Assembly: GCA_965240325.2 (NCBI GenBank)
Contig: OZ251226.1
Span: forward strand, 372,001-436,000
DNA from: Rebecca billardiae RCC1528
Taxonomy: Eukaryota; Protista; Haptophyta
Direction: 5' to 3'
DNA length: 64,000 nt
The translations under genes and the position numbers were made by a program. Shown here in pieces: positions 8,601 through 45,421 of the stretch. Below the pieces are notes generated by a model, which saw only the letters and a list, made by a program, of their open reading frames with translations, was not told the origin of the DNA and did not search any database. How positions within the stretch are numbered: position 1 is the first letter of the stretch; each line of letters begins with the position of its first letter.

Positions 8601-8841
8601 CGCCGCCTCGCGCCGGGGCGCGCCGTGCGTGTGCGGAGCGCGCGCGCCCGCCTCAGGGCCGCGCTCTTCGACGCCGACCAGAATGGCGAGTGCGGACGGC
8701 GGCGGGCAGCGCGCGGGGCGCAGCGACGGCCTCGGCTCGGGCCAAGCGGGCGCGGCGGCGCCCTCCGCGCCGCCGGCCGCGGCTCGGCCGTCAGCGCCGC
8801 CGGGCGTCGGTGCGAGATTGGAGTCGAGATGGCCGCCGCGC

Positions 8842-8903
<62 letters not shown>

Positions 8904-10454: not shown

Positions 10455-10560
10455 GCAGCTGGGCACGCGCGCTCGCGCAGCGTCGCGCGGACGTGGACGC
10501 CGCGTGGTCCGTCTCAGCAGTCTCAGCAGCGCTCCTGATGGTGTTCTGTACTCTGCTGTA

Positions 10561-10952
10561 CACGCCTTAACCAAGTGTGCACGTTAAATCATAGTAAACT
10601 GTACCATCGCGCGCTTCATGGGCGGTGACAGTTGGCGGGCGTCAATCTCGCCTGCCTGAGCTGTGTGCGTCTCTTATTCTTAGTAAACTGTAAGGCGTGA
10701 TTAACGCCATCCAACACTGCACAAAGACACCGCCACAAAACAGACCGGCGCAGGCAGGTGAGGGGCGCGTTGCCGCACCTCGTCGAGGCGGCCATTGCAG
10801 CAAGCGGCCTCCCCGCGCTCGGAGGCACGCGCTCGAGAGCGCGCTCTGACACCGCCACACGCTGAGTGAGTGACACGGGGAGGGTGCTGCACCTGTCAGA
10901 AGACAGACAGAAGGCGTATCCCAGCCACCTCTAGCGAGAGTGCAGCCGCGCC
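10561..10952. repeat. Cluster of GTAC-ended dispersed repeat fragments
   Basis: 10561-10604 matches 52247-52290 and 61208-61251. 10616-10692 matches the reverse complement of 27337-27420. 10691-10952 matches 22134-22320 and the reverse complement of 52119-52255. Confidence 0.8.
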
Positions 10953-18700: not shown

Positions 18701-20095
18701 CTCCGCGGCACGCCGGCGCGCCGCCTCCGCGCTCGCGCTCGACTCAACCCGCTCCTCCTTCGGCGGCGGCGCCAGCCCGGACGCTGCGCGCTGCGCTGAG
18801 AGCAGGGCTGAGGCCTCGCGCCGCGCCGCGTCGCGCTTCGCGCCGTCGGCGGCGCGCTCCCGCGCCGCGCTCTCGTCCAGCAGCGCCTGCTCCTTCCGCT
18901 GCCGGGCGGCCGTCGCCTCCCGCGCCAGTCTTGCCTCCTCCACCGCCTCGGCGCGCACGCGCGCCGCCGCCTCCTTGAGCTGAGCAGAGCGCGCGGCTGC
19001 GTCGGCCTCGGCCGCGGCCGCCGCCTGCTCCTCCGCCGCCGCCGCCGCCGCGTCGACGTTCGCCGCGGCCTGCTCGACGCGTGCGACCACCTGCTCGGGC
19101 GGCATAGGCCTCGGGCCCGCGCGCTCTGCAGCGGACGGCGTCGGAGTGGCCGCCGCGCCCGACGGCGGCGGCGCGGCGAGCACACTCGCGCCCATCGGCG
19201 GCGGCAGCGGTGTCTGCCGCTTGGGCAGCGACAGCGGCTGAGGCGGCGGGAGCGCCGGCGCGGCGCTGGGCGCAGGCGTGAGCGATACGGCTGGCGGCGG
19301 CGGGGCACGGGGCGAGGGGGGCACGGGCGGAGGGAGCGGCGTCGTGCGCTTCGCGCCGACCGTGGGCTTCGTCGCCGCCCCGTTCGACTCCTCCGCCGCC
19401 GCCGTCGTCATCGGGCGTGCTCGCTCGGTCTGGGGCGCCTGCGCCGGCGGCGGGAATGATGATGGTGGCGGCATCGACGAGGCCACCGGCGGCGGCGCAG
19501 CGCCCGGCTGCAGCGGGTCGTCCTCGACGATGGCCAGAACGGCAGGCGCGAGGCTCATCGGCCGCTTCGAGCCAGCCAGCAGCCGCGCGCCCAGGCCGCC
19601 GCCAGCGACGGAGCCGCCCACCGCGACCGCCTGCGCCGCCTGCGCCGGCGTGAGCGCCTGCGACTTGTCGAGCAGGCGGAAGGGCTTGATGCCGGCGGGG
19701 CCGATGTCCGACGCGGCGGGCGTGCCAGGGGCTGCATCGAATGCCGCCTCCAGGCCCTCAAACCTCGTTGCAGCCGCCTCCGGCGCCGTGGTGCTAGCCT
19801 CAGCTGAGGCCGGTGGGCCGAGGCCCTCTGCGAGCACGTGCGCGGCGTCGCTGGCTGCCCGTGGAGAGGGCGCCGCGCTGGCCGAGGAGTTCGTCGGGTC
19901 GGTGAAGAGTCCAACCGCCAGCCCACCAGTCGCCACCTTGATCGCCTCGCGCCGCGACAGGGACGCGCCCAGCCTGTCGGCGGGTTGCGCGCCGCGCATG
20001 TTGCGAGCGCCCGTGCGGCCGAAGTGCACGGCATGCGTGCCGGCGAGCGCGCAGGCGACGAGCGCGAAGAGCTGCAAGCGGAGCGCAAGCCTCAT
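12731..20095 (-). CDS. Giant Ala/Pro-rich repeat protein with signal peptide, Tat-like motif and C-terminal TM; probable introns 13295-13414 and 12986-13147
   Basis: ORF >7 kb. N-terminus 'MRLALRLQLFALVACALAG' then 'LSRREAIKVATGGLAVGLF'. Contains EAAAR coiled-coil repeats, KRxTPLPP repeats, 22-aa repeats and a C-terminal 'AAAIAAGLLLLAAWPYI'. Confidence 0.75.
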   Translation of the reverse strand: MRLALRLQLFALVACALAGTHAVHFGRTGARNMRGAQPADRLGASLSRREAIKVATGGLAVGLFTDPTNSSASAAPSPRAASDAAHVLAEGLGPPASAEASTTAPEAAATRFEGLEAAFDAAPGTPAASDIGPAGIKPFRLLDKSQALTPAQAAQAVAVGGSVAGGGLGARLLAGSKRPMSLAPAVLAIVEDDPLQPGAAPPPVASSMPPPSSFPPPAQAPQTERARPMTTAAAEESNGAATKPTVGAKRTTPLPPPVPPSPRAPPPPAVSLTPAPSAAPALPPPQPLSLPKRQTPLPPPMGASVLAAPPPSGAAATPTPSAAERAGPRPMPPEQVVARVEQAAANVDAAAAAAEEQAAAAAEADAAARSAQLKEAAARVRAEAVEEARLAREATAARQRKEQALLDESAARERAADGAKRDAARREASALLSAQRAASGLAPPPKEERVESSASAEAARRRAAEAAAAAEAAAADAARDADTARAELKAASAASAAAMADAEAARADADAALALAECTRADVAATVLAAALSTVQAERQKAFDAARGAAAEAAVACTAAANAQEQADKARAAAAAAAAVVASLQGMQAAAGAEPAAQQQQPVAAASAGGTPPVAVAPPPPLATPKRATPLPPPMTAMPLAPPPPPPAARPAAAMPPVPPPAPVVTAKRATPLPPPVPMAPPPPPPVAAPPLAVTPPPPLATPKRATPLPPPMTAMPLAPPPPPPAARPAAAMPPVPPPAPVVTAKRATPLPPLPSPTSSSAAAAPPPAAAQPSQPPPRGSLDELADEARERMLSYYRRANGPADAEQDEASAPPAPADAEPDSEMLPELEAESEEAAAAATAAAAAALEQMYAWGEGSSQSELQAVGRELASIRMNASSSPSDVRAPLDAAKKALDRARSALDGAPEKAVAAARRAVDAAADATDAALSAIAPLERAKGGAGAARDGAARAVRAVRAAVDAAATAVRSASSGLAPGSAARSALSAAGDALKTAQSAAATAAGGLGNGARALGSVPARALAASNAAAVRALAAAVAATDAAIDATAAAAARAAPFALEAFTAAQAKLAGTRAVVGDALMRAVDAAIGGVDAVRGAGAASAGAASDALRAAASAVRAASTSSRSAAGAALRAAAERARAVGGAIPNPLALAATAAESAASAVERAAGATTKGAAAAVAAADAAAVRALTAAVRAVEACVDGAADTAESALGAARPLEKLGAAGAAARDAPGAALGAIDGAAVSALTAVVRATEAAIERTIDTAAPAVTGLAAASVAGATAVGGGTTKLARAAAAAPGAAVGAADSAAVGALGAVCRVTEGAVDGVCDAAAPVLASAAQRTRAAASAVRDGLSRGPSALKSAAGGATSAAKSRLSLPRRDKAAPPSPPAGADGVLDTGAAAAESSAARMEAARKAADAAARQAAAEADAARKAEEEAAERKAAEAEAAAREATARQMAEAEAARKAALEEAAREKAAAEAAAREATARQMAEAEAARKAAAEEAARKAAQEQAARTAAAEEAAAREAAARQAAEAEAARTAAAEEAAAREAAAREAAARQAAEAEAARTAAAEEAAAREAAACEAAEAEAAAAEAAASRKAAAAESAEREAAARRAAEAALAAEEADLEPAPGTAGAADAAAGAGKPSKSPRAKAAALAEAARKAAAALREQAPAAAAAAFAVPAAAVSKADSAATGVLATVVKAADRTVDAAADKLAPAAASAADAAVGAAQKAVDAPGAAARALDSTAVAALTAVVRATEAAIDAVDSAVAAAEPRRRVAGGAAAVRGAASGALDATTAAAMAAASAADAALKGAIGAVGGVGTAAGAALQAARSSLASARDALGSALAATGSAAGGGAKGALSGVRSAAGALGDAARAARDALAGVAVGSVRGVGSAFGAAGRGVRGAAGATVSAADAAAVGALTAVVRAVEGAVDAVDGAIARVAPVQKASSALHAARSALDSARASLDNLGGATVSAVTGAAGGVAGAARATGSGVKNATAAVAGGVAGAARATGGGVKNATAAVAGGVAGAARATGGGVKNATAAVAGGVAGAARATGGGVKNATAAVAGGVAGAARATGGGVKNATAAVAGGVAGAARATGGGVKNATAAVAGGVAGAARATGGGVKNATAAVAGGVAGAARATGGGVKNATAAVAGGVAGAARATGSGVKNATAAVAGGVAGAARGVAGVPVAVGSALASAGSKAALAAQSCASATSGALTVRLLLAAARAPARRAPLGPISRSRLPTAAPAALRPRRAPQAACARLVRAVSAAALAVAARAAAARAAIATVVASCIRSIGAAGSASLGSVRWPRAAAPARRHPRAAAQPAHHVSAAGRPFTHASALPPRRPRSPPHARRVRPQAQSGLGALGGALAALGSRTGDAVVGAGRSGGAALASTRDLINRHRVKAAAIAAGLLLLAAWPYINYVWELYELPTSVAFNVQFI
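13520..14140 (-). repeat. Coding tandem repeat, 66-bp unit x ~9 (ATGGGVKNATAAVAGGVAGAAR)
   Basis: TTCTTGACGCC recurs every 66 bp from ~13566 to ~14094. Confidence 0.9.
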
Positions 20096-21255
20096 GCCGC
20101 CGGCGCGTGAGCTGCCTGCCCGAGCTCGCCGGCGGGTGAAGTCCTGGGCCCGCCCTGCGCGGGGCCGATGCCGAGCCTGGCGCGCAGCTGAGATCGTCGG
20201 CCTCTCACCGCGAGGACCGCTGCCGCGCTGCGCGAAGCGAGCTCGGCTGTCGGGCGAGCAAGGCATCTTGCCTCGCCGCCTCGCGTGCGCTGTGCGCGCG
20301 CGTCCGGGCGAGGGCCGATGACTGCCGGCCCTTTCGGCTTGGAAGTGGTCAACGCTCCCGGACCGCAAGCAGCTCGCTACCCGGTACTCGGTAGCGAGCG
20401 GTGGCAGTTACGGAACCCTTTGATGACCAGCTGCTGCAGCCATTATTATTTTCTGCATGCTCGGCTTGCATACCTATTACCTCACGTCCGTCGTGGGGTG
20501 CAACGGACAGGCGGTCAACGGAGTCAGTGAAGCTGTAGCCGATCGGTCAGCAGGGTCGGTAGCGGATCTGTCCACCCAGTCCCAGAAAGCCCCTGAGCCC
20601 GTCTTTACTCAGAGTAAAGTCTTTAGGATTCGTCTTCGGCTTCAGCGGGCTCAAAAGACAAAACCTACCGACGGTAGGTTTTCATTTTGAGCTCAGTGAC
20701 TAAGAAATGGGCTGGCAACGAATGGCTGCGGGTATTTCTCAATACCAGGGGCCTTGATGTAGGGGGCTGGCACGGGTGGAGCAGACTGAGCAGGTCTGGA
20801 CGAACACCATTCAGGGTCAAACGGTCCCAGACGTCGATGGGTCCGGACGCGGGTCGCAGCGACGCCCCCACTGGACCGGACTCGTACCGCGTCAGATGAC
20901 TACCGTCTCAGTGCCGTCAGTCTGTGCGGCGTCAAGGCGCGTGCCCGCAGCGGCCACCGCGGTGGTCGCGGTGCCACGCATCGTTAGCCGCCGCTGGCTT
21001 GCATATGACCGATGAAGCGGACGACACGGAGTCACTTCAGACGTGAGATGATCGAACTGTAAAAAAGACTTATTATAAAATGAAAGTAACACTGTAGCGT
21101 ACAGTCCTACCTGTAGTGTCGTTAAATCATAGAATGAGTCAGCGGCACGCACAATAATAATAAATAGGGAAATGCTACATGACTGCAAATGGCGGCAATA
21201 CTCGACGGTTCCGCGGGTTCGGGTGAGTCGACGATCGATCACGATCGAAGCTAAT

Positions 21256-31208: not shown

Positions 31209-32448
31209 GCCGGTCGGGGCGCAATCACCACGATGAGTCCCGACGACGCCCTGTCAGGGGCCGCCGAAACCAGCCGACCCGCGCAGCCGGCGTGGGTACC
31301 GTCCGGATCAGGAGATCGCATCACCGTCGTCGTCAGACTGCACCGCTCCCGACCGATCCCCTATTCCCCTTACCATACCGCAGTTCAATCTGCTTCGAAG
31401 CAGATTTGACGGCGGCCGCTGCGCGCGCTTTGCGGCCCACCCACGCGCGCCTGGGCGTTGAACACGGCTTGAGAGTGCCCAGGCATGGTCTAGCTACCCT
31501 CAGACAGCCGCCAGCCTAGTACCTCCAGCTTCACCGCCTCCACGATGGCAACGCGCGGCGGCGCCGAGCTGCCGTCGTGCTGGCTGGGCGCTCGACTGGC
31601 CCGCGACACCCGGCTGCACTCCTTGCAGCCGCTTCAAGCACGTGGGCGACCGACAAAGATGATTGTAGACAGTGTACATACTGCGCGCGTTACTCTGCGC
31701 GCGTTCGCATGACCGATCACGCTGAAAGTGCCCACCAGCCAGCCGCGCGGGACACGCTGAGGCACGGGTCGGGCTCCTTCCTTGCGGCACGCCGCACGCG
31801 GTGTGTACACCGAGTGCAAGTCAGGCAGGCGCTTCGCGGGAGTGGTGGCATCGCTTCTTCGCCTGTGTTGGCGTCGATCGCAGGCGCGACGCGCGTACCC
31901 CTCGCAAGTACACCCTCCTCGTGCTCAGTGTCACTCGCGCGGAGCCCACGGTGAGGGATCTTGAGCTCGAGGTGCAGCGTACGAGCCTACGGGCGCTGAG
32001 TAGCAGCCTACCGACCAGCGCACGGGTGACGACCGTCATCCATTATGTTATGATACCCCTCCCAGCCTCACGCCGCAGCCTGACGATCACCTCCGCAGCG
32101 GTTTGAGCACCATTCCAAATCTGCTTCGTGGCATGTTCAAACGCTCGTTTGGCACTCCGTCTGGACGCCGTGGCACGGGAGAAGGGGAAGGGCGGTGGCG
32201 GCGAGGCTCGGGTCATCGATGGGTATGGTCCCAAAGATGCCCCCAAGCGTGCGCGCGCCCGCTCGCGCCGTCTACCTGCGCGCCCAGCGCTCCCACGCCG
32301 CCGCCCACCCAAATCTGCTTCGTATATAGAAGCAGACTGCGGTAAGGGGATAGGACACCGGACGGAGCCGCGAAGACCGTTGGGCGTTTACCGTAGGCAC
32401 CCGGTTTCAAAGCCCTCCACCTGCGCGAGCGAGCTCGCGCCAGGCGCG

Positions 32449-35400
32449 ATGATCGCAGTGCTCATCGACGGGTCAGCGGAGCAGTGGGCGGGCGGGTGCC
32501 GCGTGCCCGAGCTGATGCTCGCGACCGTGCGAATCCTCGACCACTGTACCACGGCCTCCGCCACCACCGTCGACCGCAAGTGGTCTGCGCGTGTGTACGG
32601 CGGCGCGCGCGGCAGCCAGCTGGCGGCTGGGCTCGAACGCCCGACGGCCATCTCGGACGCCAGCCTCGACCAGCTCGAGACGCTGCTGGACAAGGTGGCG
32701 CGAGCGCACGCCACGGCCCAGGCGCCGCTCGCGGGCTGGCCCGCGCTCGTCGACGCGTGCAAGGCGAGCCTCTCCGACTTTGCATGGCTACCGGTCGAGG
32801 TGTCAGACTCTGGCGAGGAGGTGGACACGGAGGCGGAGCGGCACATCGTCATCGTCGCGCCCGAGCTGCTCGGCGGGGGCGATGCCGCCGAGTCCGCCGC
32901 GCACGCTCGCCAGCTCGACGCGCTCGTCTCGCGCAGGGCGGGCGCAGCGCGTGCGCGCGTGCACTGGGTCGACACGTCAGCCGCGCCGCCGCGCGACCGA
33001 GCGCGTGCGCAGGCGGCGGCGGAGGCGCGACGGCTGGTCGAGCGCGGCGGCGGCGGCGTGATCGCGCTGGACTGGCTCGTGCGCACGCGCCACGCGCCGA
33101 TCCCGCTCCCGCTCCTCATGCGCTGCGCGCTCGGCGGCGCGCCGCAGGGCGCTGGGCAGCCGTCAAGCGGCGCGCACGCGCCGGCTGAGCCTGAGCCGAC
33201 CAAGCGCGAGGCGAAGGGCGTCGGCGCGGGCGGAGCGGCCGCGCGGCCGGCTGGCAGCGGCGCCGACGCGTTGGCGGTGACGCTGCTCGCCGACGACGGC
33301 CGCGTCCTCTGCGACGGCCTCGTCGCGCACGCCGTCGGCGCCGCCCTGCTCGCTCGTCCTGCTGACGACCCGGCAGCGACCGTGGCACACGGGGCGGAGC
33401 GTCGCGCGGCCGGTGCGGGCTCGGGCGCGCCGCCGCGCGCGCAGCTGCGGCTGCAGCTCGTTGCGACAGCGTGCCTCGCGTCGCTCGCGCCCGCGCTGCT
33501 CGACGCGCGCTCCGCCGGCTACGCTCTGCTCACCGCCTCTGCCGCTGGCGGCGCCGCTGCGCGGTGCGCTTGGGTCGCTCTGCTCTGTTCGCTCGCGGAG
33601 GCAGGCGCGGCCGCCATCGTGCGTGAGGCGGACCCGCCAGCGCGCGAGCGCGGGGCGCTCTCCGATGCCAGTGGCGCGCTGGACGCGGCTCCGCCGAGCG
33701 CGGACGAGCCGCGTCCGCTGCTCGCGCTTCGGCCTCTCAGCGCGGGCGCGGCGTGCGCGCACCGACTGTCGGTGTGCGCGCCGCGCGTACCGTGTCTGCC
33801 GACGCCGACGCCGGCGCCCTCGTCGGCGGCGCCACCGGATCCGCACGCGCCGGCGCTCGTCGGCTCCGCGCCCGCGCAGGATCTCGCTGCCGCCGCGCAG
33901 CCCGCGGCGGGCCCGCGAACAACACGCACGCGCGCGCGCGCCGCCGCCGCCGCTCGCGCAGAGGGCGCAGCGTACGGCGCGGCGCCGTCACCCCGAGGCT
34001 CGACCGCTGCCGGCGCGCGCCAGCCGGCGCCGCGGACGCGCGCAGCTCAGGCACAGGAGGCTGCGCCGAAGCGGGCCTCGGCGGAGCCGCCGGTGCATGC
34101 TCGCCTGTCGGGCTCGGAGCGCGCGGCCGAGGCCGTCGCCACAACGACCGCCCCGGCAGGCGCGCGCGGCGCCGAGCCTGCTCCGCGCTCGCTGCCAGAC
34201 GACGACGGCTGCGCAGAGTCCGGCCGCGCAGAGTCCGGCTGCGCAGCGTCTCTGCGTGAAGAGGACGCGCTGGCGCGCGCGCTGCTGTGGCGCGCTACGG
34301 ACTGGCACCTGCCCGCCCTCCTCCGTGACGCGCGCGGCGGCGCCGACGACGCGTCGGCGACGGCTGCCGCCGCCGTGGCACGCTCGGCGGAAGCGCCCAC
34401 CGCGGCCGCGGACGAGCGCGCGCCCCTGCTGCCCACGGCGTGCCAGCCGCAAGGCCGGCAGGCGGCGGGCGTAGAGCAGGCGCCGAGCGCGGGCGGGTGC
34501 GAGCCGCGCGCCGCCGAGGACTGCGCGCTCGGCGGTGGCGGCGGCGGCGGCGGCGGCGGCGCAGGGGACAGCGTCACGGCCGAAGCACCGCCGCCGCGCG
34601 CAGCGCGCGGCGCGCAGTCGGGTGCAGCGCAGCGGCCGGACCCGTCGCTCCTCCCGCCCGGACTGCAGGCGGTCCCGCTGGCCCACGCGCTGGGCGCGGC
34701 GGCGCAGCCGCGGCCGCGCGGCCGCGCGGCCGCCTCGGCTGCCGCGCGCAAGCGGTCGCGCGCGCCGGAGCGGCGGGCGGAGGCGCGGCGGCCGCGGCCC
34801 GCGCGCGCGCCCGAGCCGAGTGCGCACGCGGCGCTTTGCACGGCCGAGGCGCCGAGTGTCGCCGTGGCTGCGGTGGCCGTGCCGGCAGCCGAGCAGCTCT
34901 CGCTACGCAGCAGGCTGGAGCACGCGTGCGCGCTGCGCGCCGAGCGACTCGTGGCGCGCGCCGCCGCAGCCGCGCACGACGCTGAGCTCGAGCGCAGCGC
35001 AGCGGCGCGCGCCGCCGCGTGCGCGCGCGTGCCGGCGGCGACGGCGACGGCAAGGGCGACGCCTGTGGAGGCAGAGGCGGGCTCGGAGCGTGCGCGCGTC
35101 GGAGCGTGCACGGGCCTCGTCGTGTACCCGGGCTCGAGCCCTACGCCCGCGCCCCCGCCGCCCGCCGCCGAGCCCCATGCCGCCGCGCCGCCGCCGCCGC
35201 CACGCGCTGTGGCCCTCGGCGCGGCCGCAGCCGACTCGCACGCGGCCGCGGCCGCGAGCGGTGCGGGGCGCGCAGCCGACGCGGGCGGCGGCGTGGCGTG
35301 CCGCGCGCTCACGCTCTGCGCCGCGCCTGGCGCGCTGAGCGCGCTGAGCGCGCCGAGCGCGCCGCTCGGCGCCCTCGGCCCGGCGCCGCCCGCGCCCGCC

Positions 35401-37281
35401 GCCCTCCGCCCGAGCGGCGCTCTCGACGGCGCCCTCGCCTCCGTGCGCGCTGCAGACGACTGGAGCTCGCTGCTGGGCGCGCTGAGCGCTTGCTACGAGG
35501 GGCTGCTGAACTGCGAGAGCGCGGAGGCGCTGCTGGGCGGCGCGCTCGACGTCGTGCTGCCCGCCGCGCTGGAGACGGTGCGCCGGCTGCCGCCCTCGCC
35601 CGAGCTGCCCGCGCACGCGCGCACGCCCCGCGCCGCCGAGCGGCTGCGACCGCTGCGGCTGCGCGCGCGCACGCCCACGCCGCCGAGCGCGCGCACCCGA
35701 GGCGCAGCCAGCCGCTCCGGCCGGCGCGAGACGCCGGCGCGCGCGAGCTCGCCCGGAGCGGCGTGCGCGGACGGCGCGCCCGCCTCGCGCGAGGCGGAGC
35801 CTGAGCGCGCGCCGCCACCGCCGCCACTCGGCTCGCCACCGCCGCGCTCGCCCGCCGCCGCCGCTGGCGGTGGCGGCAGCCCGGCGCCGCGCGCTCGCTC
35901 GGAGCGCGCGCTCGCGCAGGCTGCGCTGCACGCGCGCGTGCGCGACACGCTGCTGCGCGCGCCCGCCGACATGCGCGAGGAGTACCACGCGGCGGGCGCG
36001 GGTGCGGGCGGCAGCGGCGGGTGCGGCCCGGTGGCCGCCCCGCGCGCCGCCGAGGCCGAGCAGCCCGGCACGCCCGCGCCGCCGTCCGCGCTGCCGCCGG
36101 CGCACCGGCGGGCGCGGCACCGCCGTGAGCTTGAGCTGCAGCTGCTGCTGCGGCTCGAGCTGGGCGCGGCGCGCGCGGACGCGGCGCGCGCGGAGGAGCG
36201 CGACGCGCCGAGCGCGCAGCAGCCCGAGGCGTCGGCGCCGGCGGGCGCGCGCACCGCGCCCGGCTCCAAGCGCAAGCGAAGCCCGGCCCGCGCGCTCGGC
36301 CCCGCCGCCGCCCGCGCGGCCGCGTCCGCGGCCGAGCTGCCCGCGCGCGAGCGCAGGGAGGTGCGGGGGCTGCTGACCGAGCTGCACGTGCTGCTGGACG
36401 AGTCGCTCGGCGGCGGCGCGCCCGCCACGCCGGCCGGGGCGGCGGGCGGCGGGCAGAGCAGCCGCTTCGAAAGGCTGCTATGCGCGCAGCTGCACGCCCG
36501 CTTCGCCCACCGGCTGCCCGCGCTGATGGCGGAGCTTCTGGATTACTTCGAGCTGAGCGCGCCGACACCGCCCGCGCGGTCGGCGAGCGTGCCGCCGACG
36601 GCGCCGCCGCCGGGCGGCGAGCGCTCGCTGGCGGCGGGCGGCGCGGGGAGTGCGCAGGAGGGCGGCGCCGTCGCCCTGCCACGCCTGCCGCCGCCGCCCG
36701 CCGCCGCCGCCGCCGCGTGCGCCGCCGCCCGCGCGCCCGGCATGCCGCCCATGCCGCCGCCGCTGCCGCCGGCCGCCGCCGCCGCCGCGCTGCCGCTGCC
36801 GCCGCGCGAATACCCCTACACGCACACGCACACGCAGCGCACGGCGCCGCACTGCTCGCGGCCCTCGCCGCACCGGCAGCGGCAGTCGATGGAGCGGCGG
36901 CAGATCAGCGTGGCGCTGCGGAAGCAGAAGGCCTCCAAGGGCGCGCGCAAGCAGCAGCGCCCGCGCGCGCGCAGCGCCGCGGCCGCCGGCGCGACCCTCG
37001 TCGAGGTGGACAAGCGAAGGGCGGTGCGGCCGGCCGGCAGCGCCGCCGACGGCCGGCTGCGCGCGCACCAGTCGGCCAAGCGCGCGCGCAAGCAGATCCT
37101 GCAGGCGCGCACGCCGGCGGGGCGGCTCGCGCGGCCGAGCATCGCGAGCACGCTCGCTGCGCAGACGCCAGCGCGGCGCGGCGGCGACGCGCTGCCGCCG
37201 TGGGCGCTCAGCCAGCCGGCGCGCGCGCAGCCGACAGGCAGCAGCTTCCTCCGCGTCGCCGAGACGCCGCTCAAGCCATGA
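32449..37281 (+). CDS. TICRR: Probable Treslin/TICRR (Sld3-related) replication initiation factor
   Basis: N-terminal 'IAVLIDGS...TVRILDH...RKWSARVY...ASLSDFAWLPVE' resembles Treslin_N. 'RRELELQLLLRLEL' resembles the Sld3/Treslin domain helix. C-terminal 'VAETPLK' resembles the CDK site. Recognised from memory. Confidence 0.6.
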   Translation: MIAVLIDGSAEQWAGGCRVPELMLATVRILDHCTTASATTVDRKWSARVYGGARGSQLAAGLERPTAISDASLDQLETLLDKVARAHATAQAPLAGWPALVDACKASLSDFAWLPVEVSDSGEEVDTEAERHIVIVAPELLGGGDAAESAAHARQLDALVSRRAGAARARVHWVDTSAAPPRDRARAQAAAEARRLVERGGGGVIALDWLVRTRHAPIPLPLLMRCALGGAPQGAGQPSSGAHAPAEPEPTKREAKGVGAGGAAARPAGSGADALAVTLLADDGRVLCDGLVAHAVGAALLARPADDPAATVAHGAERRAAGAGSGAPPRAQLRLQLVATACLASLAPALLDARSAGYALLTASAAGGAAARCAWVALLCSLAEAGAAAIVREADPPARERGALSDASGALDAAPPSADEPRPLLALRPLSAGAACAHRLSVCAPRVPCLPTPTPAPSSAAPPDPHAPALVGSAPAQDLAAAAQPAAGPRTTRTRARAAAAARAEGAAYGAAPSPRGSTAAGARQPAPRTRAAQAQEAAPKRASAEPPVHARLSGSERAAEAVATTTAPAGARGAEPAPRSLPDDDGCAESGRAESGCAASLREEDALARALLWRATDWHLPALLRDARGGADDASATAAAAVARSAEAPTAAADERAPLLPTACQPQGRQAAGVEQAPSAGGCEPRAAEDCALGGGGGGGGGGAGDSVTAEAPPPRAARGAQSGAAQRPDPSLLPPGLQAVPLAHALGAAAQPRPRGRAAASAAARKRSRAPERRAEARRPRPARAPEPSAHAALCTAEAPSVAVAAVAVPAAEQLSLRSRLEHACALRAERLVARAAAAAHDAELERSAAARAAACARVPAATATARATPVEAEAGSERARVGACTGLVVYPGSSPTPAPPPPAAEPHAAAPPPPPRAVALGAAAADSHAAAAASGAGRAADAGGGVACRALTLCAAPGALSALSAPSAPLGALGPAPPAPAALRPSGALDGALASVRAADDWSSLLGALSACYEGLLNCESAEALLGGALDVVLPAALETVRRLPPSPELPAHARTPRAAERLRPLRLRARTPTPPSARTRGAASRSGRRETPARASSPGAACADGAPASREAEPERAPPPPPLGSPPPRSPAAAAGGGGSPAPRARSERALAQAALHARVRDTLLRAPADMREEYHAAGAGAGGSGGCGPVAAPRAAEAEQPGTPAPPSALPPAHRRARHRRELELQLLLRLELGAARADAARAEERDAPSAQQPEASAPAGARTAPGSKRKRSPARALGPAAARAAASAAELPARERREVRGLLTELHVLLDESLGGGAPATPAGAAGGGQSSRFERLLCAQLHARFAHRLPALMAELLDYFELSAPTPPARSASVPPTAPPPGGERSLAAGGAGSAQEGGAVALPRLPPPPAAAAAACAAARAPGMPPMPPPLPPAAAAAALPLPPREYPYTHTHTQRTAPHCSRPSPHRQRQSMERRQISVALRKQKASKGARKQQRPRARSAAAAGATLVEVDKRRAVRPAGSAADGRLRAHQSAKRARKQILQARTPAGRLARPSIASTLAAQTPARRGGDALPPWALSQPARAQPTGSSFLRVAETPLKP

Positions 37282-37779: not shown

Positions 37780-37851
37780 GAGAGAGAGAGACGCCGAGAG
37801 ATTAAGCGTATACGTATATATAGAGAGCGAGAGAGACTCAGAGAGAGAGTG

Positions 37852-37917
<66 letters not shown>

Positions 37918-37987
37918 AGAGAGATGTAGATATATAGATATAGATATAGATATAGATATAGATATATATATATAGACGTACATATAG
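37780..37987. repeat. (GA)n and (GATATA)n microsatellites
   Basis: Directly visible in the sequence. Confidence 0.9.
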
Positions 37988-40600
37988 ATTACCAGGTGGC
38001 CGCACGCCCTGCCTGAACCGGCAGCCGCGCTTTAGGGAAACACCATCCGGGGGGCCGCCTTTCACTTAAGGACACGCGGGTGGGTGATTACTGAACACGT
38101 GAACCATGTCCTTTTCGGACATACGCACACGCAAGATCTTGGGTACGCAGTCATACTATCTGAATCCTGAGCGCCCACAAGCCCTCTTGGGTCCATGATA
38201 ATCTGCCTCGTCAGCGAGCGTCCAAAAGCGAATCCGACGGAAGGTTTTGATTGAAAGCGAGCGCTTTCTCCACTACGAGACGGATTCCATTCTGGTCCGC
38301 TCGTTCTGAACCAAAAGGGCATGGATGCCGTTCCACGGCGCGCGCGCGGTTGGGGCGGGCGGCGAAGCGGTTTGGTCGGTGGGGTACGGTACAGTCTGTG
38401 GCGGGCCGGCGGTGGGTGAGCTACCTATGCAGTTTAGTTGCGCACGCTCGCTCGACGGCAGACCGGCCATAATCATGCAAGTAGCAATAGCATCAAGCTG
38501 TATGTGTCCGCCACTCCGCCAAGTCAAGAAGTGCTAGTCCCTACTTAGTTACGCCGGCGGCCGGCGGGCACATATCATTCACTAGAGACGGCACCCTCGA
38601 CGCCACTATTGGCCTTCCGTACCCCGCCCGCCGCAAGCCCGCCGCACATCCGTATATGATCGTGAGCGTTTCAGACGACAAGTGGACTAGGGCAGCAGCT
38701 GGCAAAACGCACCGTCGTCGGCGTCGATGGCTCACACGATCGCGTACCCGGTGGTGGTCGGAGTGCCGGTTGGGTTCACCATGCCCAACGGTCTCCCTTC
38801 GGGCCAGTCGGCCCGCACGAATGCGCCGCGACCAGCGCCATTTGCCTCGCAACCATCGGCAGCATCGTTGCGCAACCGGGGCGGTCGCATTTGCCGGCGC
38901 AACATCTACCTGACCATCTCTGCAGTGCCCAACAACCATCCTCTCCTTTCCAACCTTCCTGCAGTGGCGACACACTTGCTGGCGCCATTGAGGGGCAAAC
39001 AGAAGGAGTTCGTAGTCAGACGACTCATTTAGTGCTGACATCAAGATAGATATAATAGATATAGACATTGACCCGCTCCTCAGGGAGTCCTCGGCTCCTC
39101 CGCGACGAGCATCAGTCCGACCTGCTCGCCGCCAGACTTATCTGCGCCGGCGTATATAGACTGAATGTCGCGATGAATGTCAGAATGAGCCGCCTCAATT
39201 ATAATATAACGGATACTATTGGGCTGCCGGCGCTGCGCCCGGCGCTGCCGCCAGTCGCGTGACGGCTCAAGCGAGACCGTGGCAGCAATTGGCGTAGCAG
39301 CGACGATCACGATGATGTCGATGATCGATGGCGATGCCGCCGCACTCGGTGGCATCCGCGATGACGGATGCAGTCTCAGGCACCTTCGCAGGATGCGCAG
39401 CAGCGCTCAACCTCGCAACCGGATGATCACGTACAGGAAGCCGTCCGGATGGCTCGACGCCGACGCGAGCCAGTCGATGGGCGCGTCGATCGGCGCGGGC
39501 ACACCCTGGACGAGCACCTCGCTGACGTGCGGGCCTGGCACCGCTGCCGATGGGCCATCGGCTCGCGCCGTGCTGTCGCATGCTTCCGCCGCGGTCGCAG
39601 CTGCGGTAGACATTCGAGTGAGCAGCAGCGCGCAGTGCGCTTGGCTCGGCTTGGCAGCTCGGCGAGCGTCAATCCGTCTGAATTCACGGCCGATTCAGTG
39701 CGCCGCTGCATGGCCGTACCGTGGCTCGCAACGACGGTATCGTCTTCGACGACATGGATTTCACGCACATGACGGCCAAGGCCGTGATCAAGATGCTCGA
39801 CCCCAACTACGAGCGATCGGTGCACACGCGCTACACGAATGCCAAGATCCCCGCAGACATGCCACGCGTGTTCACGACAAATCTGGCCATGCAGTACCCC
39901 TACGAGCACATCTTCCCGCCCGGTCGCAACCTCGAGCAGCAGCGTGCGCTCAACCGCCGCTTCAAAGTCGTGACGGTCGATGCCGACCTCTTTGCGGCGG
40001 CTCCCGCCGCCGGCGCGTCAGCGGCTGCCGTGCAGACGTGAGCCATCAGCAAGCGTGCGTCGGTGCATAGCCGCAAGATGCCCTGCTCAGCCCTGCTGAG
40101 CTGCTCAGACTGGCTTGACCCTCACGCTAGTGCCAGGCGGCCTGGCGGTGAGGCGCCGCGGCAGCGGGCCGCCCTTTCGTCAGCCCTCTCTCGAGCGGCT
40201 TGCGGCGAGGGCGAGAACAGCGGTGAAACTGAAACATGGGTGTCCTCGGGCCAATCAGGTTAGCGCAAACAGACCGCGCAGCCTGAATGCGTTGAGAGGA
40301 GCTAGTACACCGACCCTGAATAGCCCTATGGGCGAACTCGTTTTGCGGATGTGGAGGCCCCCAAGATTCCGCCGATGATTCGGCACGATTAGGGAAGCAT
40401 GCAAGCGTCCAACCGGTACAACATAAGAAGCCGCTGAGAAGTATAGGCTCAAAAATGACCATAAGCCCCAATCGCGGGGCGTACGGTTGCGTGTGTTCGA
40501 CAACTTGACCCTGAAATCAATTGGAGACCGGGTAGAGCGGTCCAAGGCGCGGCCGGCGTCAGACCGCCGACTCACGCATATGACTTCTCCACCTGGTAAT
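37988..40600. mobile_element. 2.6-kb unit bounded by a 12-bp inverted repeat, carrying a decayed CRESS-type Rep
   Basis: ATTACCAGGTGG (37988-37999) and CCACCTGGTAAT (40589-40600). Both flanks are (GA)TATA-type microsatellite. Confidence 0.6.
38727..40041 (+). pseudogene. rep: Degenerate CRESS-DNA-virus-like Rep (HUH nickase plus SF3 helicase)
   Basis: The 5' part has motif I-like 'RRNIYLTIS' then 'KEFVV'. The 3' part (39721-40041) has Walker B 'GIVFDDM', 'RSVHTRYTNAKIP', motif C 'RVFTTN' and Arg finger 'ALNRRF'. The middle is disrupted; HUH and Walker A are not recognisable. Confidence 0.75.
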
Positions 40601-40666
40601 TCATAGATATAGATATATAGGTATATATATATATAGTAGCAGTAGCAGAGAAGTATAACTATATAT

Positions 40667-42242
40667 ATGACCGCGTTCCGCGGTCCTTCCGTAGAACCAA
40701 CGTAGTTAGAGGCCCGCGGTGCACCCTCCGTTGCGCCTCGTGCCGGCAGAGCGAGAGCGCGCGCCACTGCTGCGGCCCCGCCCCCCGGGCCCGTGCGCTC
40801 ACTCACACGGCGCTGCGCAGCCGCGCACCGAGAGGCGAGACCGAGCGCGGAGCTCGGGGTGGAACGAGGCGAGCGGCGGGTCGCGCCTGCCGCCGCGCGT
40901 GCGCGCCTGCTCCACCGCGCCACCGTGCAGCGTGCTCGCCCGCCGCCTCCTCCGCCGCGTCGGCCTCGAAGCAGCGGCGGCCAGCCAGCCGACCGAGGCT
41001 GAGCCCGTGCGTGCTCACTCACCCGGCGCGGTGGCGCCCTCGAGTCGACGGCCGTCTACTCCACAGCTGGCTGCTCGAGCTGCTGCACGGGGCGTCGCGA
41101 CGAGGGCGCCGCGCGCGCCCAGCCAGCGCGTCCGTCGCCGCGTCGCGCACGGCGCAGCGCGTCGAGCTCGGCGCCGCGCTTCCGGGCCAGCTCGGCGCCC
41201 AGCGCCTGCGCGCGCACGTGCTCCGATGCACGGCCCGAGTCAGCTGGGCGCCCGGCTGCGCGACCGAACGGGAACCGGCGCGCGTTCCACGACTGTCACT
41301 GCTCCTGCTTGTCCTCACGCTGCTGCACCTCCACGCCGCCGTCGACCGAGTTGCTAAGGAGGAGCTCGCGCTCGACGTCACGAGGAGCGAGCTCGCGTGC
41401 TCGAGCTCGCCCTTCAGCCGCGCTAGCTCCGGGCGCATCCGTTGCGTGCTCGCGGCGCGCTCCTCCTCTAGCAACGAACGAGCTTACGCGTAGTGCTCCG
41501 GACTCGGCTCGCCCTTGCGCGCTCCTCCTCGAGGACGAACGCGCCCGCGCGGGCAGGGCCCGCGCCCGGGTAAAAAACCTGCTGTGTTCGGCCTCGGCCC
41601 TCGGGCCGCCATCCAATACCGGGTGCCGTTCGTCATAGTTCAGACTCGGCCAATCGGTAATCGGATGCGACGCATCATACTCGCCGGGAGCGCAAAGGTT
41701 CGTCGTCAGTAAAGTTGAGTACTTGACGGATTTTTGGTAGGACCTCCATGCATCACTGCGCTTGGGTCTCGTCCCATTTGGCAGCGCGCAAAGGTTCGTC
41801 GTTAGTAAAGTTGAGTAATTTGGCAGCGCGCAAAGGTTCGTCGTTAGTAAAGTTGAGTACTTGACGAGACTTTTTGCCAGGAGCCCAGGACCTCCATCGC
41901 ACGCGCTTGGGTCATCGTCCTATTTGGCAACATTATGGTCGTATGAAGATTTACAACAAATCGCAGATTCGTTCACCCAGATATACTGACAAATGCACGT
42001 CCACAGGCTCACGTCCGTCCGTAGATACGGAATTGGAGCGGGCGCGGCTATTTCGTCAATCGAGTCTTGCTAATGCAAAGCAATGGGCCAATGTACCCCT
42101 CGAAAAAGCGAAAACTCACCCTCCAACAGCCCTCAAAATCGTCCCCCGTCCCCTTTTCTTTGATCAAAAGATCTTTTTGACAACGTAGTGAGGGCCCCCG
42201 GCGGGGCTCCACGCTACGCGCTCCGCCCTGCACCGCGGGCCA
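40667..42242 (-). mobile_element. Non-autonomous Helitron2/Helentron-like element, copy 3
   Basis: Both ends are the reverse complement of copy 1. ~41780-42242 matches 1020-1445, and 40730-41200 matches ~2420-2840. Contains repeated GCGCAAAGGTTCGTCGTYAGTAAAGTTGAGTA units. Confidence 0.75.
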
Positions 42243-42543: not shown

Positions 42544-45052
42544 TCAGCTGACGATCGTCTTGCTGACGGCCTCGCGCACGCGCGCGTGGTCCAAGAGGTC
42601 GGCCTGCGAGAGCGCGACGCCCGCCTGCTCCTCCTCGCTCACCGGCTGCGCCATGAGCTTGAGGAAGCGGCGCGCAATCATCACACCCATGTCTGCGCGC
42701 GCACGCGCACGAGCGCGGCGCCCGCCGTGCCCGCCGTGCCGGCGGCGGCGCGTGGCGATCAGCCCGCTCCGTGCGGCGGCCGGGCGCGCGTTAAGTGCGG
42801 CGCGCGCGCACACGCGCACACGCGCACGCGCGCACGCGCGCACCGGTCGAGAGGTTGAGGTGCGCCTCCGTCATGTGCTGCCCGATCCACGAGGGCAGCT
42901 TGTTGCGCTTGTCGACTCGGTTGAAGCGCGCGTCTGCAAACACGATCAGGCCGTAGTCCGTCTTGCCGCGGATCACGCGCCCGGCGCACTGCGCGGCCTG
43001 CCGGATCGCGTCGAACGTGATGAAGTCCGCCTCGTTGATCTGGCACGTCTCCGCCAGGTACTCGAGCCGCGCCGTGAGCGGGCGCGACTTGGTGTACTGG
43101 AAGGGCACGCCGAGCAGCAGCACCGCGCGGCCGTAGTGCCGGTCAAAGTCGACGCCCTCGGCGACCTTGCCGCGCGCGACGGAGAGGAAGACGGCGCCGC
43201 GGCCGCAGTCGCACGCGCGCTTGTAGTTCTCGAGCGCGAGCGTGGTCTCGACGATGTCGGGCGTCTCGATGAAGACGAGCTTGTGCTCGAGCACGCGGTC
43301 GAGCACGGTCGGCAGCCGCCGGCCCTGCTTGCCGTTCCCGTTGCGCGCGGGCTCGGGCGCGGTCGCCCAGCGGCGGATGACCTCCTCCATGTAGAGGTAG
43401 GAGGGGAAGAAGGCGACGAGGCCGTCGGGCACGTGCTCGGACATCTGGATGAGCAGCTCGCCGTACGCGCGCACCGTCGCCTCCTCGGAGCGCGTCTCGA
43501 AGCGCGTCGACAGCGGCGTCTGGTCGGCGGCCCTGCAGAGCACCAGTGGGCAGATGCACTCGCGCCGCAAAGACATGGTGAGCGTGCGCACGACGCTCGG
43601 CGAGAAGCGCAGGAGCTTGGGGTAGAGCTCGATGGGCGAGAGCGTGCCCGAGGTGATGATCACGCTCTGGAAGCGCTCGAACACGTGCTTGATCGCGATC
43701 GACGCGTCGAGGCAGCACAGCTGCAGCACCGGGTCCGGGAGCGACGGCGTGCGGTCGTCCGACGGCTCGAGCAGCACGCTGAAGCCCGACTCGAACGTGG
43801 CGCACATCGTGCCGAACTCGGCGACGAGGGTGAGCGGCTGGAACTCCTGCACGTTGGTCACCTCGAGCGTGCGCAGCAGCGAGCGCAGCCGCTCGGACGC
43901 GAACTTGAGCGGCTTCGCGTCCACGTTCGCCTCCTGCTGCAGCCCGGCGAGGAAGCGCGCCGGCCGCTCGACCGTCACGGTGCGCTCGGCCGCGCACCGA
44001 TCGAGCCGCGCCTTCACGTACCGCACGACGCGCTGCATGAAGGTGACGAAGTGCTCGGCGCGGCGGATGTTGCCCGGCACCGCCTCGTTGAGCATCGACT
44101 CGGGCAGCACCGGGTTGGCGCGCAGCTCGTCCGCCGCGCCCGCGCCCTGCGGCAGCGCGCCGCTCTGCGCGAGGCCCGACACCAGCCGCTGGTACTCGCG
44201 GTTCAGCCGCTCCGCGTCCACGCGCTTGAGCTTGGCGACCTCGGCGTGGAGGCGGCCGATGTTGCGCTCGCACGCCTGGAGCGTCGCCTCGCGGAAGTTG
44301 ATGCTCATCACCTCGATGCACACGTTGTCGATGTTGTGCGCCTCGTCGAACACGATGATGCACTCGCGCTGCAGCGACTTTGAGATCAGCCCCGCAATCT
44401 TCGGGTCGAGCAGGTACTGGTAGTTGTACACGACCACGTCGGCGAAGGAGACGGCGTGGCGCGCGAGGAAGTACGGGCACCAGCCGCGCCCGCGCGCCAG
44501 CTCCTTCAGCTCGTCCAGCGTGTACACGCCGTGCTCCAGCGCCGAGTCCGTGCCGTGCGCCTCGAGCGCCTCGTAGAAGGGGCACAGCTCGACCGCCTCG
44601 GGCTGGCTCGCGCCGCGCGCGCGCACCCACGAGGCGGTGAGCGAGCGGCAGCGCGTGTCGACGGACTCGCGCTCGGACTCCTGCGACACCGTCTCGTGGA
44701 TGCACATGTTCTTGCGCGACGACAGCCCGATCGCGAGCAGCCGGTGCGAGCGCTCGGCGCCGCGCAGCCTGTCGCGGTGCTTCTCGAGCTGCTGCAGCTC
44801 CTCGAGCACCTTCTCCATCTCGGGGACGGTGCGCGTGCAGTAGACGAGCTTGCCCACCTCGGGGTGCGCGCGCTGGTACGACGTGACGAGCGAGAGCAGC
44901 GTCACCGTCTTGCCCGTGCCGGTCGGCATCTCGAGCAGCGCGTGGCCGCGCGCGTCGAGCGCGCGCTTCACCTCGAGCATGTACGCGTACTGCTCGGGGT
45001 AGATCTGCGCGTACGGGAAGTCGACGGTGAGCCCGTCGAGGACGATCTCCAT
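42544..45052 (-). CDS. XPD: TFIIH helicase XPD/RAD3; exons 42844-45052 and 42544-42692
   Basis: FPYAQIYPEQYAYM, LEMPTGTGKT, Fe-S cysteines (NMCIH, CRSLT, CPFY, WCPYF), FDEAHNID, TSGTLSP, ARGKVAEGVDF, AQCAGRVIRGK. Intron 42693-42843 gives LST-D-MGVMIARRFLKLMAQP. Confidence 0.97.
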
Positions 45053-45421
45053 GCTGGCGTGCGTGCGCGCGCGCGCGCGAGCCCGAGCGGTGCTGGTCGC
45101 CGCGGGGGAAGCCACTCTCGCCTCACGGCCACTACTAGTACACGCCGAGCGCCATGGCCGTGTCCCGGCGACCCGGCCAAAGCGCATCCGGATTCCGGGC
45201 GCACCATCGTCGTCCGGATTTTTATTGGATTTTAGCCGAGGACCGCCAATAATTGTTATTAATTGATTGCATGGACCGACTCAGGCGACTGTCGTCGACG
45301 ACTCAGACTGGCAGCCATTCGTGCGTCAGCCTGGCGCTTGGCAGCAAGGCGAAGCGCCGCGCCGCGCCGCAGATCACATTGGCGACAGAATCGTGCAGTC
45401 TGCGACACACATCCTCGATGA

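Follow-up and report, generated by a model that had tools for sequence, protein, structure and literature searches.

A dead Rep-only element in a eukaryotic microsatellite, with intact relatives in marine plankton DNA that look like an undescribed kind of mobile element

The block at positions 37988–40600 of the window (the whole stretch of 64,000 nucleotides analysed here) is, on the evidence of its relatives, one decayed copy of a small mobile element that has no capsid gene and encodes nothing but a CRESS-type Rep, in which an HUH nuclease with one tyrosine is joined to an SF3 helicase. It was inserted into an AT-rich microsatellite of a very GC-rich, intron-poor eukaryotic genome. Its intact relatives resemble jumping or integrating elements of a kind not yet described, and they show that units with nothing but a Rep between inverted ends are real, recur and move. 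We have found no published description of such Rep-only elements with inverted ends.

The inserted block measures 2,613 bp and is delimited by inverted 12-mers, a step in G+C content and a microsatellite split in two (the block, its arms and the microsatellite halves are annotated without strand). The left inverted end (ATTACCAGGTGG, 37988–37999, forward strand) has its reverse complement at the right end (40589–40600, reverse strand), and the ATAGAT-type microsatellite that served as target lies around them, with its left half annotated at 37922–37987 (from tandem-repeat rows and repeat families; the repeat itself runs at about 37922–37989) and its right half at 40601–40635 (from repeat families and the sequence; about 40603–40635 for the repeat itself). 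These two ends are the sole matches to the 12-mer in the 64 kb, with one mismatch allowed and 0.05 expected, and the inverted match stops at 12 bp, with no inward extension. A perfect inverted pair of 12 bp is not rare in itself, since a second, unrelated one is found within the same 3.2 kb, and the weight of the pair therefore comes from its position, with both arms at the microsatellite edges and at the composition step (G+C of 0.60–0.62 throughout the block vs. 0.80 and 0.68 in the two flanks). Position and composition step together confirm the perfect 12-bp inverted ends at the edges of the flanking microsatellite that had been reported in the preliminary description. The outer four bases, ATTA at the left end and TAAT at the right, form an inverted and not a direct repeat. 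The outermost two to four bases (AT, TA), palindromic and microsatellite-like, may belong to the target and not to the element, so that the certain inverted repeat of the element is 8–10 bp long; counted inside the TTA it is 8 bp and begins with CCA.

Between the ends and the gene lie two non-coding arms, one upstream (38000–38726), with ORFs that have no Pfam match, and one downstream (40042–40588), likewise without a Pfam match; neither arm resembles the related loci or folds significantly, nor do the 80 nt at either tip of the element form a significant hairpin, and this copy has no significantly iterated word. The block has no second copy within the window and no match among plasmids, and the window contains neither a tRNA nor any Rfam family. 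A bacterial or plasmid origin of the window was considered and rejected, since it contains long microsatellites as well as a GT61 domain and an XPD gene that is intronless, at 69% G+C.

The broken Rep gene (38727–40041, forward strand, annotated in one part) consists of two aligned pieces in two frames. Over 49 residues, the N-terminal one aligns at 41% identity to the motif I region in the intact relative P0002 (E 4e-12), while the C-terminal peptide matched 705 proteins (best E 1e-32) and aligned to a profile of 27 relatives with an E of 1e-41 and a probability of 100 (hhalign). Its IVFDDM, its FTTN and the arginine of its RRF fall on invariant or nearly invariant columns, corresponding to Walker B, motif C and the arginine finger, respectively. 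The approximately 712 bp between the two pieces align to nothing and contain 6–10 stops per frame, and the 192–196 residues that carry motif II (HUH), motif III (Tyr..Lys) and Walker A in the relatives have no significant match in the window. Scans of the pieces against Pfam, PHROGs, NCBIfam and PDB sequences were empty, and the Rep remnants are thus recognised only via their relatives. Word searches with the 106-aa piece gave no match among proteins of 58–185 aa, those with an alignment including both window pieces gave nothing nearer than the P0001 and P0002 families, and the window peptide had no match in a first scan of metagenomes. No capsid, transposase or other domain was found in any ORF of the block. 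The earlier view of this locus as a dead copy with motif I-like and SF3 remnants of a CRESS-type HUH–SF3 Rep and no recognisable capsid holds in all its parts: the remnants are real, judging from the matches to relatives and the conserved columns, the type of Rep is supported via the intact proteins, the ORFs of the block have no capsid-like domain, and the two frames, the stops and a catalytic core that can no longer be recognised mark the copy as dead.

The closest relatives of the window Rep, with 59–63% identity in the C-terminal part and nothing nearer on record, are intact HUH–SF3 Reps of 360–436 aa on marine and coastal metagenome contigs. His152, Tyr201, Lys204, Gly300, Gly305, Lys306 and Thr307 (P0002 numbering) are invariant or nearly so among them, as are the arginine-finger, Walker B and motif C columns, and there is one conserved Tyr. 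The profile of the 27 relatives matches the solved Reps 7vg8 (2e-14), 1l2m and 7lar, and Pfam recognises Gemini_AL1 in nine of the 27 and Viral_Rep in eight. The structure model of P0002 (pLDDT 82) has a two-domain fold, for which Foldseek returned the full-length CRESS Rep 9pqq, the geminivirus nuclease 7vg8 (target TM 0.75) and AAV Rep40/68. Identity between families goes down to about 35%, with every ORF intact.

These relatives include six families (F1–F6) in which a lone Rep is found per unit of 1.7–2.6 kb, with sharp inverted ends that measure 11 to about 35 bp and are specific to each family. Copies of a unit are 98–99.9% identical and stand in differing flanks in marine plankton DNA. 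In F1, five different left and three different right flanks begin at the same bases, F5 has four left and three right junctions, and F6 has four right ones; F2, F3 and F4 are likewise bounded units and were counted as mobile. In five families the arms outside the Rep measure only 149–632 bp, which leaves no room for a second gene, and no transposase or capsid domain was detected in the scanned flanking and neighbouring ORFs. In this way the expectation that a Rep alone between inverted ends would recur at many loci was borne out by six related families with intact genes. That the same ends would recur was not, as the window 12-mer was absent from the three related loci searched for it and the printed ends differ from family to family; the exact ends of the window element, F1 and F5 were also absent from the viral contig collection.

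The ends fall into more than one type. In F5 and F6 both ends read TTAA followed by CCC, where the TTAA may be target or element and the inverted repeat after it, beginning with CCC, has 11 bp in F5 and about 16 bp in F6, while both ends are TA in F1, F4 and the window element. A 4-bp direct duplication may be present in one F2 contig, to be read with the caution that short-read metagenome contigs may join flanks of different copies, so that duplications cannot be read reliably from them; another observation in F2 is a Logan contig that spans exactly one unit, end to end. Upstream of rep, 7-mers are significantly iterated in F2, F5 and F6, and folding of the first and last 80 nt gave strong hairpins in F3, F4 and F5, at the left end only. 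One relative adjoins genes with DnaJ-domain and LRR products, which is a cellular context, and among the flanking ORFs of related contigs only those of L055 have informative domains. Inverted-repeat scans of L008, L009, L022, L044, L053 and L055 did not rise above shuffles. The inverted pair of L051 was rejected for its disagreement with the homology boundary, and the apparent inverted ends of L018 and L040 were set aside as one 15–17-mer common to unrelated contigs, which we take to be an amplification primer.

In a distance tree, built on about 90 residues and without support values, the window Rep groups with F1 and F2, the bounded or host-flanked families form one group, and the eight circular contigs (8/8) fall outside it. 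Relatives on circular contigs are more distant and match in the helicase only. Like the geminivirus-, genomovirus- and circovirus-type Reps found in CRESS-DNA viruses and related plasmids, the relatives have a one-tyrosine HUH nuclease, a linker and an SF3 helicase, all motifs being kept in the intact proteins, and several families also have iterated words and a hairpin upstream of rep. Unlike CRESS virus genomes, the nearest relatives are linear inserted units, without capsid or second gene, and not circles.

Rep nucleases are known to have been turned into transposases only a few times, in IS200/IS605, IS91/ISCR, Helitrons and Replitrons, and to our knowledge none of these has an SF3 helicase or inverted ends. 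Helitrons combine a two-tyrosine Rep with an SF1B (Pif1-like) helicase and have neither inverted ends nor a duplication; the elements described here resemble them in the fusion of a Rep nuclease to a helicase within a eukaryotic transposon, but differ in the single conserved Tyr, the SF3 helicase and the inverted ends. Replitrons are eukaryotic mobile elements of algae and protists whose one-tyrosine Rep has a distant link to CRESS Reps; they have no helicase, as the preliminary description had also stated, and their ends bear short direct repeats (PMC10288648), in contrast to the fused SF3 helicase and the inverted ends of the window element and its relatives. A comparable arrangement is that of the "geminivirus-like transposon" of Tuber melanosporum, multi-copy, with 37-bp inverted repeats, a Rep, two transposase ORFs, a microsatellite inside and no obvious duplication (Liu et al., 2011, PMC3198968). 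It is alike in having a geminivirus-like Rep between terminal inverted repeats, but no transposase ORF is present in the window block and there is no room for one in the relatives.

The reading that we put forward, tentatively and at somewhat less than even odds, is that the element's own Rep may be its mobility and replication enzyme. The Rep would recognise the repeated words and the hairpin in the arm upstream of its gene and would nick one strand at each inverted end; the helicase would then unwind the unit, and a replicated copy would be joined into a target containing T-A. The inverted ends would be the two halves of a Rep recognition site, abutting as a palindrome on any free circle. 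The window copy is itself incapable of these steps, since its catalytic core is gone. The identity of the protein, the mobility and Rep-only content of its relatives, a long association of the Rep with this architecture, and iterated words and hairpins that would be cis signals for it, speak for the Rep as driver, as do the grouping in the tree and the one cellular context. Against it stand the piggyBac-type ends of F5 and F6, the TA ends, the possible duplication in F2 and the window copy itself, with its lack of a significant hairpin or iterated word and its ends of only 8–12 bp, unlike those of the relatives (with the 12-mer searched in three loci). The nine protein variants of F1 are all intact, but their coding differences are few, two synonymous vs. 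six non-synonymous, so that purifying selection is not demonstrated, which also counts against a Rep-driven mobility. Terminal inverted repeats are the mark of DDE transposases, and we know of no described HUH transposon that has them, nor of any way in which a one-tyrosine Rep could integrate double-stranded DNA alone. The broader claim, that the clade is a new superfamily of eukaryotic mobile elements, capsid-less and moved and copied solely by an HUH-Y1–SF3 Rep acting on its own inverted ends, is possible, if rather doubtful.

A serious competitor, itself far from assured, is that these units could be non-autonomous cut-and-paste transposons with TA/TTAA-type ends, carrying a virus-derived Rep as cargo and mobilised by a DDE transposase in trans; the retention of the Rep would then reflect either the youth of the copies or its use in amplifying excised ones. 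The terminal inverted repeats of all six families and of the window element suit such an origin. The piggyBac superfamily is characterised by TTAA duplication and by 12–19-bp repeats starting with C[C/A/T][C/A/T] (PMC5381638), of which the TTAA-CCC ends of F5 and F6, with inverted repeats of 11–16 bp, are reminiscent, while the TA as outermost dinucleotide in F1, F4 and the window element is Tc1/mariner-like; the possible 4-bp duplication of F2 points the same way, and the Tuber element offers a precedent (PMC3198968). However, no transposase was found in the elements, in their flanks or in the window block, the units are too small for one, and these closely related Rep-only elements would require transposases from two separate superfamilies. 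A cargo gene kept intact in every one of six families, at identities down to 35%, is not normal, and sets them apart from non-autonomous piggyBac and Tc1/mariner elements, here with no DDE partner known; the repeated words and the hairpins that precede rep point to a functional module of Rep and origin. In the window the outer four bases, being inverted and not direct, are not a TTAA duplication. The earlier suggestion of TA-type ends around a captured Rep has thus gained weight from the TTAA-CCC ends of two families and the TA of the nearest one.

Two further origins appear improbable. The block might be an integrated linear, hairpin-ended replicon with a parvovirus-like replication, in which the HUH–SF3 Rep resolves the terminal repeats and mediates integration and rescue. 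An HUH–SF3 enzyme of the same architecture, AAV Rep68/78, is known to work on inverted terminal repeats and to bring about integration; the best structural matches of the intact relative include AAV-2 Rep68 in complex with its integration site, and the Logan contig of exactly one F2 unit would fit a free linear molecule. But most ends are short (8–35 bp), the terminal 80 nt fold significantly only at the left ends of three families, no free linear form was observed, and AAV differs in its long terminal hairpins, in its capsid gene and in its nuclease, that of the relatives being of geminivirus/circovirus type by sequence. Very improbable is an ordinary endogenous viral remnant, left by the accidental integration of part of a circular CRESS virus, with a 12-bp match due to chance. 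Such a match may indeed arise by chance in 3 kb, the window copy is single and heavily degraded, no other copy with its ends is on record, and the more distant relatives are circular contigs; yet both arms coincide with the microsatellite edges and the composition step, and the window Rep sits inside a clade whose nearest members are inverted-end units at many loci and not circles.

If the clade is indeed a Rep-only superfamily, a Rep would have been recruited independently as a transposase of eukaryotes for the third time, and for the first time together with an SF3 helicase and terminal inverted repeats, and a recently amplified Rep-only clade in marine protists may be a direct intermediate on the way from single-stranded DNA viruses or plasmids to transposons. 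Otherwise, we would be looking at cut-and-paste transposons that retain a viral replication gene over long periods. Both readings bear on the conversion between viruses and transposons, and also on annotation, since protist genome projects will label such units "endogenous CRESS viruses" and metagenome surveys will label them "viruses".

A mobile family of elements that carry only a Rep gene and are bounded by inverted ends exists, and the 2,613-bp block at window positions 37988–40600 is a dead member of that clade. The block opens with ATTACCAGGTGG (37988–37999) and closes with its reverse complement (40589–40600), the complementarity of the two ends extending over 12 bases and then stopping. 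These are the sole matches to the word in the window when up to one mismatch is allowed (0.05 expected). Since a second, unrelated perfect 12-bp inverted pair lies within the same 3.2 kb, such a pair is unremarkable in itself; the notable point is where its arms lie, at microsatellite edges and at a step in composition. Both arms adjoin an ATAGAT-type microsatellite that runs on at either side of the block, and the G+C fraction is 0.60–0.62 in every part of the block, compared to 0.80 in the left flank and 0.68 in the right one. The preliminary description had reported both the perfect 12-bp ends and their coincidence with the microsatellite edges, and both observations stand. The outermost AT/TA of each arm is palindromic and microsatellite-like, and therefore the inverted repeat surely belonging to the insert is 8–10 bp long. 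No second copy of the block was found in the 64-kb window.

The surrounding sequence has 69% G+C, with some blocks >80%, and contains long microsatellites. An AT-rich microsatellite is among the few places offering a TA/TTAA-like target in such a genome, a scarcity that fits the insertion site of the block. Directly left of the ATAGAT-type repeat there is an (AG)n microsatellite of ~51 units (37822–37924), the two making up an AT/AG-rich island flanked by blocks of 70–83% G+C; a 42-bp unit in perfect tandem duplication (41776–41859) is located 1.2 kb right of the element. Three host genes, all on the minus strand, identify an intron-poor eukaryotic host: an uninterrupted XPD/Rad3-type helicase gene (42791–45187; DEAD_2, HBB, and Helicase_C_2), an SF1 helicase gene (6678–10574; AAA_11/AAA_12), and a GT61 glycosyltransferase-domain gene (3558–5174). 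From this we infer a GC-rich, intron-poor unicellular eukaryote, neither animal nor crop. Two giant open frames in DNA of ~80% G+C, one of 2,545 aa (12731–20368, minus strand) and one of 1,717 aa (32128–37281, plus strand), have no Pfam match and may represent either low-complexity genes or artefacts of a composition poor in stops.

The coding remnants of the block gave no direct match in Pfam, PHROGs, NCBIfam, or PDB sequences, and a word search with a window piece, which covers proteins of 58–185 aa only, was blank. The C-terminal peptide singled out in the preliminary description, taken as query in a full representative protein search, matched 705 proteins at E ≤ 1e-3 (best 1e-32, 62% identity), always at the C-terminus of proteins of 300–450 aa. 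A family profile built from 27 full-length relatives matches solved geminivirus/circovirus-type Reps (7vg8 at 2e-14, 1l2m, and the full-length 7lar); Pfam detects Gemini_AL1 in nine of these 27 members and Viral_Rep in eight, and the motif II His, motif III Tyr and Lys, Walker A, Walker B, motif C Asn, and Arg finger are invariant or nearly so. The structure predicted for P0002, an intact metagenomic relative (pLDDT 82, residues 91–430 mostly >90), matches a full-length CRESS Rep, AAV Rep68, geminivirus nuclease domains, and SF3 helicases. The C-terminal piece of the window matches the 27-member profile at E 1e-41 and the N-terminal piece corresponds to the motif I region of P0002 (41% over 49 aa, E 4e-12), so the Rep motifs had been correctly assigned from the start.

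The block contains a single broken gene, rep (38727–40041, plus strand), which aligns to P0002 and to P0001, another metagenomic Rep, as two pieces in different reading frames, indicating one frameshift or more; the aligned pieces themselves are free of stops. The gap between them measures 706–712 bp, compared to 192–196 residues in the relatives (an excess of ~125 bp), holds 6–10 stops per frame, and gave no alignment above chance to P0001 or P0002. As the window rep covers 134 of the 331 residues of P0001 and 178 of the 433 of P0002, and the gap is unalignable, the region of HUH, Tyr, and Walker A cannot be recognised. A short stretch of the same type as the flanking microsatellite lies inside rep. 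The other ORFs of the block, on either strand, have no Pfam match at E ≤ 1, and neither a capsid nor a transposase is detectable under this search. The earlier claims that the copy is dead and has no recognisable capsid hold.

The relatives are proteins from metagenome assemblies, including Tara Oceans and marine metagenome samples; two JGI samples we take to be coastal, which their records do not state. Contigs of the closest clusters revealed six families (F1–F6), each with one intact rep (360–436 aa) within a short unit bounded sharply by inverted ends, whose copies are 98–99.9% identical and whose flanks diverge from the first base beyond the ends. The nearest family, F1 (63.5% identity in the C-terminal part; L003 2491–4220, 1,730 bp), has ends of ~32 bp starting TATCGCC, with five different left flanks and three right flanks. 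F2 (L004 179–2047, 1,869 bp) has 28-bp ends starting GGCAGTGG, and one Logan contig corresponds exactly to a single unit. F3 (L010 46–2651, 2,606 bp, ends of ~35 bp) and F4 (L011 75–1955, 1,881 bp, ends of 28 bp) are each known from a single contig, while F5 (L046 549–2258, 1,710 bp, 15-bp ends starting TTAACCCC) has four left and three right junctions, and F6 (L058 187–2305, 2,119 bp, ends of ~20 bp starting TTAACCC) four right junctions. The arms outside rep are 149–632 bp long in five families and the upstream arm of F3 reaches 1,146 bp, leaving no room for a second gene. The preliminary description would have abandoned its proposal if other Rep copies lacked the window ends or sat next to capsid genes; they do lack them, but possess their own ends, and capsid genes do not adjoin them. 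The window 12-mer core is absent from the first three related loci.

Several of these contigs have other features. An unrelated repeat directly left of the F1 element (L003 143–2474) has inverted ends of ~120–180 bp of short tandem sub-repeats and encodes mirror-image acidic ORFs. Directly before the full F5 copy, a 269-bp fragment with the left end only is followed by 59 bp of other DNA (L046 221–548), the kind of fragment expected of replicative, not cut-and-paste, movement. Two F2 contigs have 83 bp of right flank in common before diverging (L004 2048–2131 and L006 1992–2075), and their left flanks differ at the element's first base, which could reflect chimeric assembly or insertion into another repeat. 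The same 15–17-mer at both ends of two unrelated contigs (L018 1–17 and 2956–2972; L040 1–15 and 2210–2224), is presumably a random-amplification primer left in the assemblies and not a biological repeat.

A search among 5.8 billion clusters turned up, within its limits, no nearer relatives of the window than F1 and F2, and the viral contig collection contains no exact match to the ends of the window, F1, or F5. An alignment-based metagenome scan retrieved 39 loci, with lower G+C in those matching the helicase half alone; eight of the latter are contigs with identical 77–127-bp ends, and hence circles. These circular CRESS-like contigs were used as they stand, for the circle count and the distance tree only. 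In a neighbour-joining tree of ~90 C-terminal residues, the window is joined first by F1 and next by F2, and a single group contains all families that are bounded or host-flanked and excludes the eight circles; these groupings are an indication only, the tree being short and without support values. One relative (L055) adjoins a DnaJ-domain gene and an LRR-containing gene and thus sits in cellular DNA.

The end sequences vary from family to family: F1 and F4 have TA as their outermost bases, F3 and the window have TTA…TAA, and F5 and F6 have TTAA, with F2 as the exception. TA is the signature of Tc1/mariner elements. TTAA followed by CCC is that of the piggyBac superfamily (PMC5381638). F1 shows no duplication longer than the palindromic end bases and in one F2 contig the four bases to the left of the unit recur to its right; TA and TTAA being palindromic, a target duplication and a part of the inverted repeat look alike in sequence, and short-read contigs may join flanks from different copies. 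CRESS origins are hairpins flanked by iterated Rep-binding words. In F3 (z -6.1), F5 (z -4.2), and F4 (z -2.4) a strong hairpin immediately follows the left end, upstream of rep, and none lies at the right ends; F2, F5, and F6 have significantly iterated 7-mers in the region preceding rep; the window copy has neither at a significant level. All F6 copies also contain a 108-bp imperfect palindrome upstream of rep (L056 313–420).

We tentatively favor a mechanism in which the Rep itself would move and replicate the unit, with the inverted ends as its recognition sites, because rep remains intact and alone across families with Rep identity down to ~35%, no transposase is seen, and origin-like signals are present. 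Against this, we know of no HUH transposon with inverted ends, nor of a route by which a one-tyrosine Rep achieves double-strand integration, and the TA/TTAA ends look like those of DDE transposons. Differences within F1 are four times less frequent in coding (8/1,083) than in non-coding positions (21/649), but two are synonymous and six non-synonymous, so selection is not shown, which also counts against Rep-driven movement. The main rival, a non-autonomous TA/TTAA transposon that retained a viral Rep, is possible though we give it less credit; an element of Tuber melanosporum offers a precedent but carries transposase ORFs (PMC3198968), none being detectable in the window block. A parvovirus-like hairpin replicon is unlikely, and a plain endogenous fragment with an inverted repeat arisen by chance very unlikely, both being less likely than Rep-driven movement or a TA/TTAA transposon.

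Among known systems, Replitrons have a one-tyrosine Rep and direct terminal repeats and, as the preliminary description had it, lack a helicase, and Helitrons combine a two-tyrosine Rep with an SF1B helicase (PMC10288648). A full-text search for a Rep with SF3 helicase between inverted repeats returned, apart from unrelated work, only the papers on Replitrons and on the Tuber element. We rate the window element as a Rep-bearing mobile element derived from ssDNA replicons.
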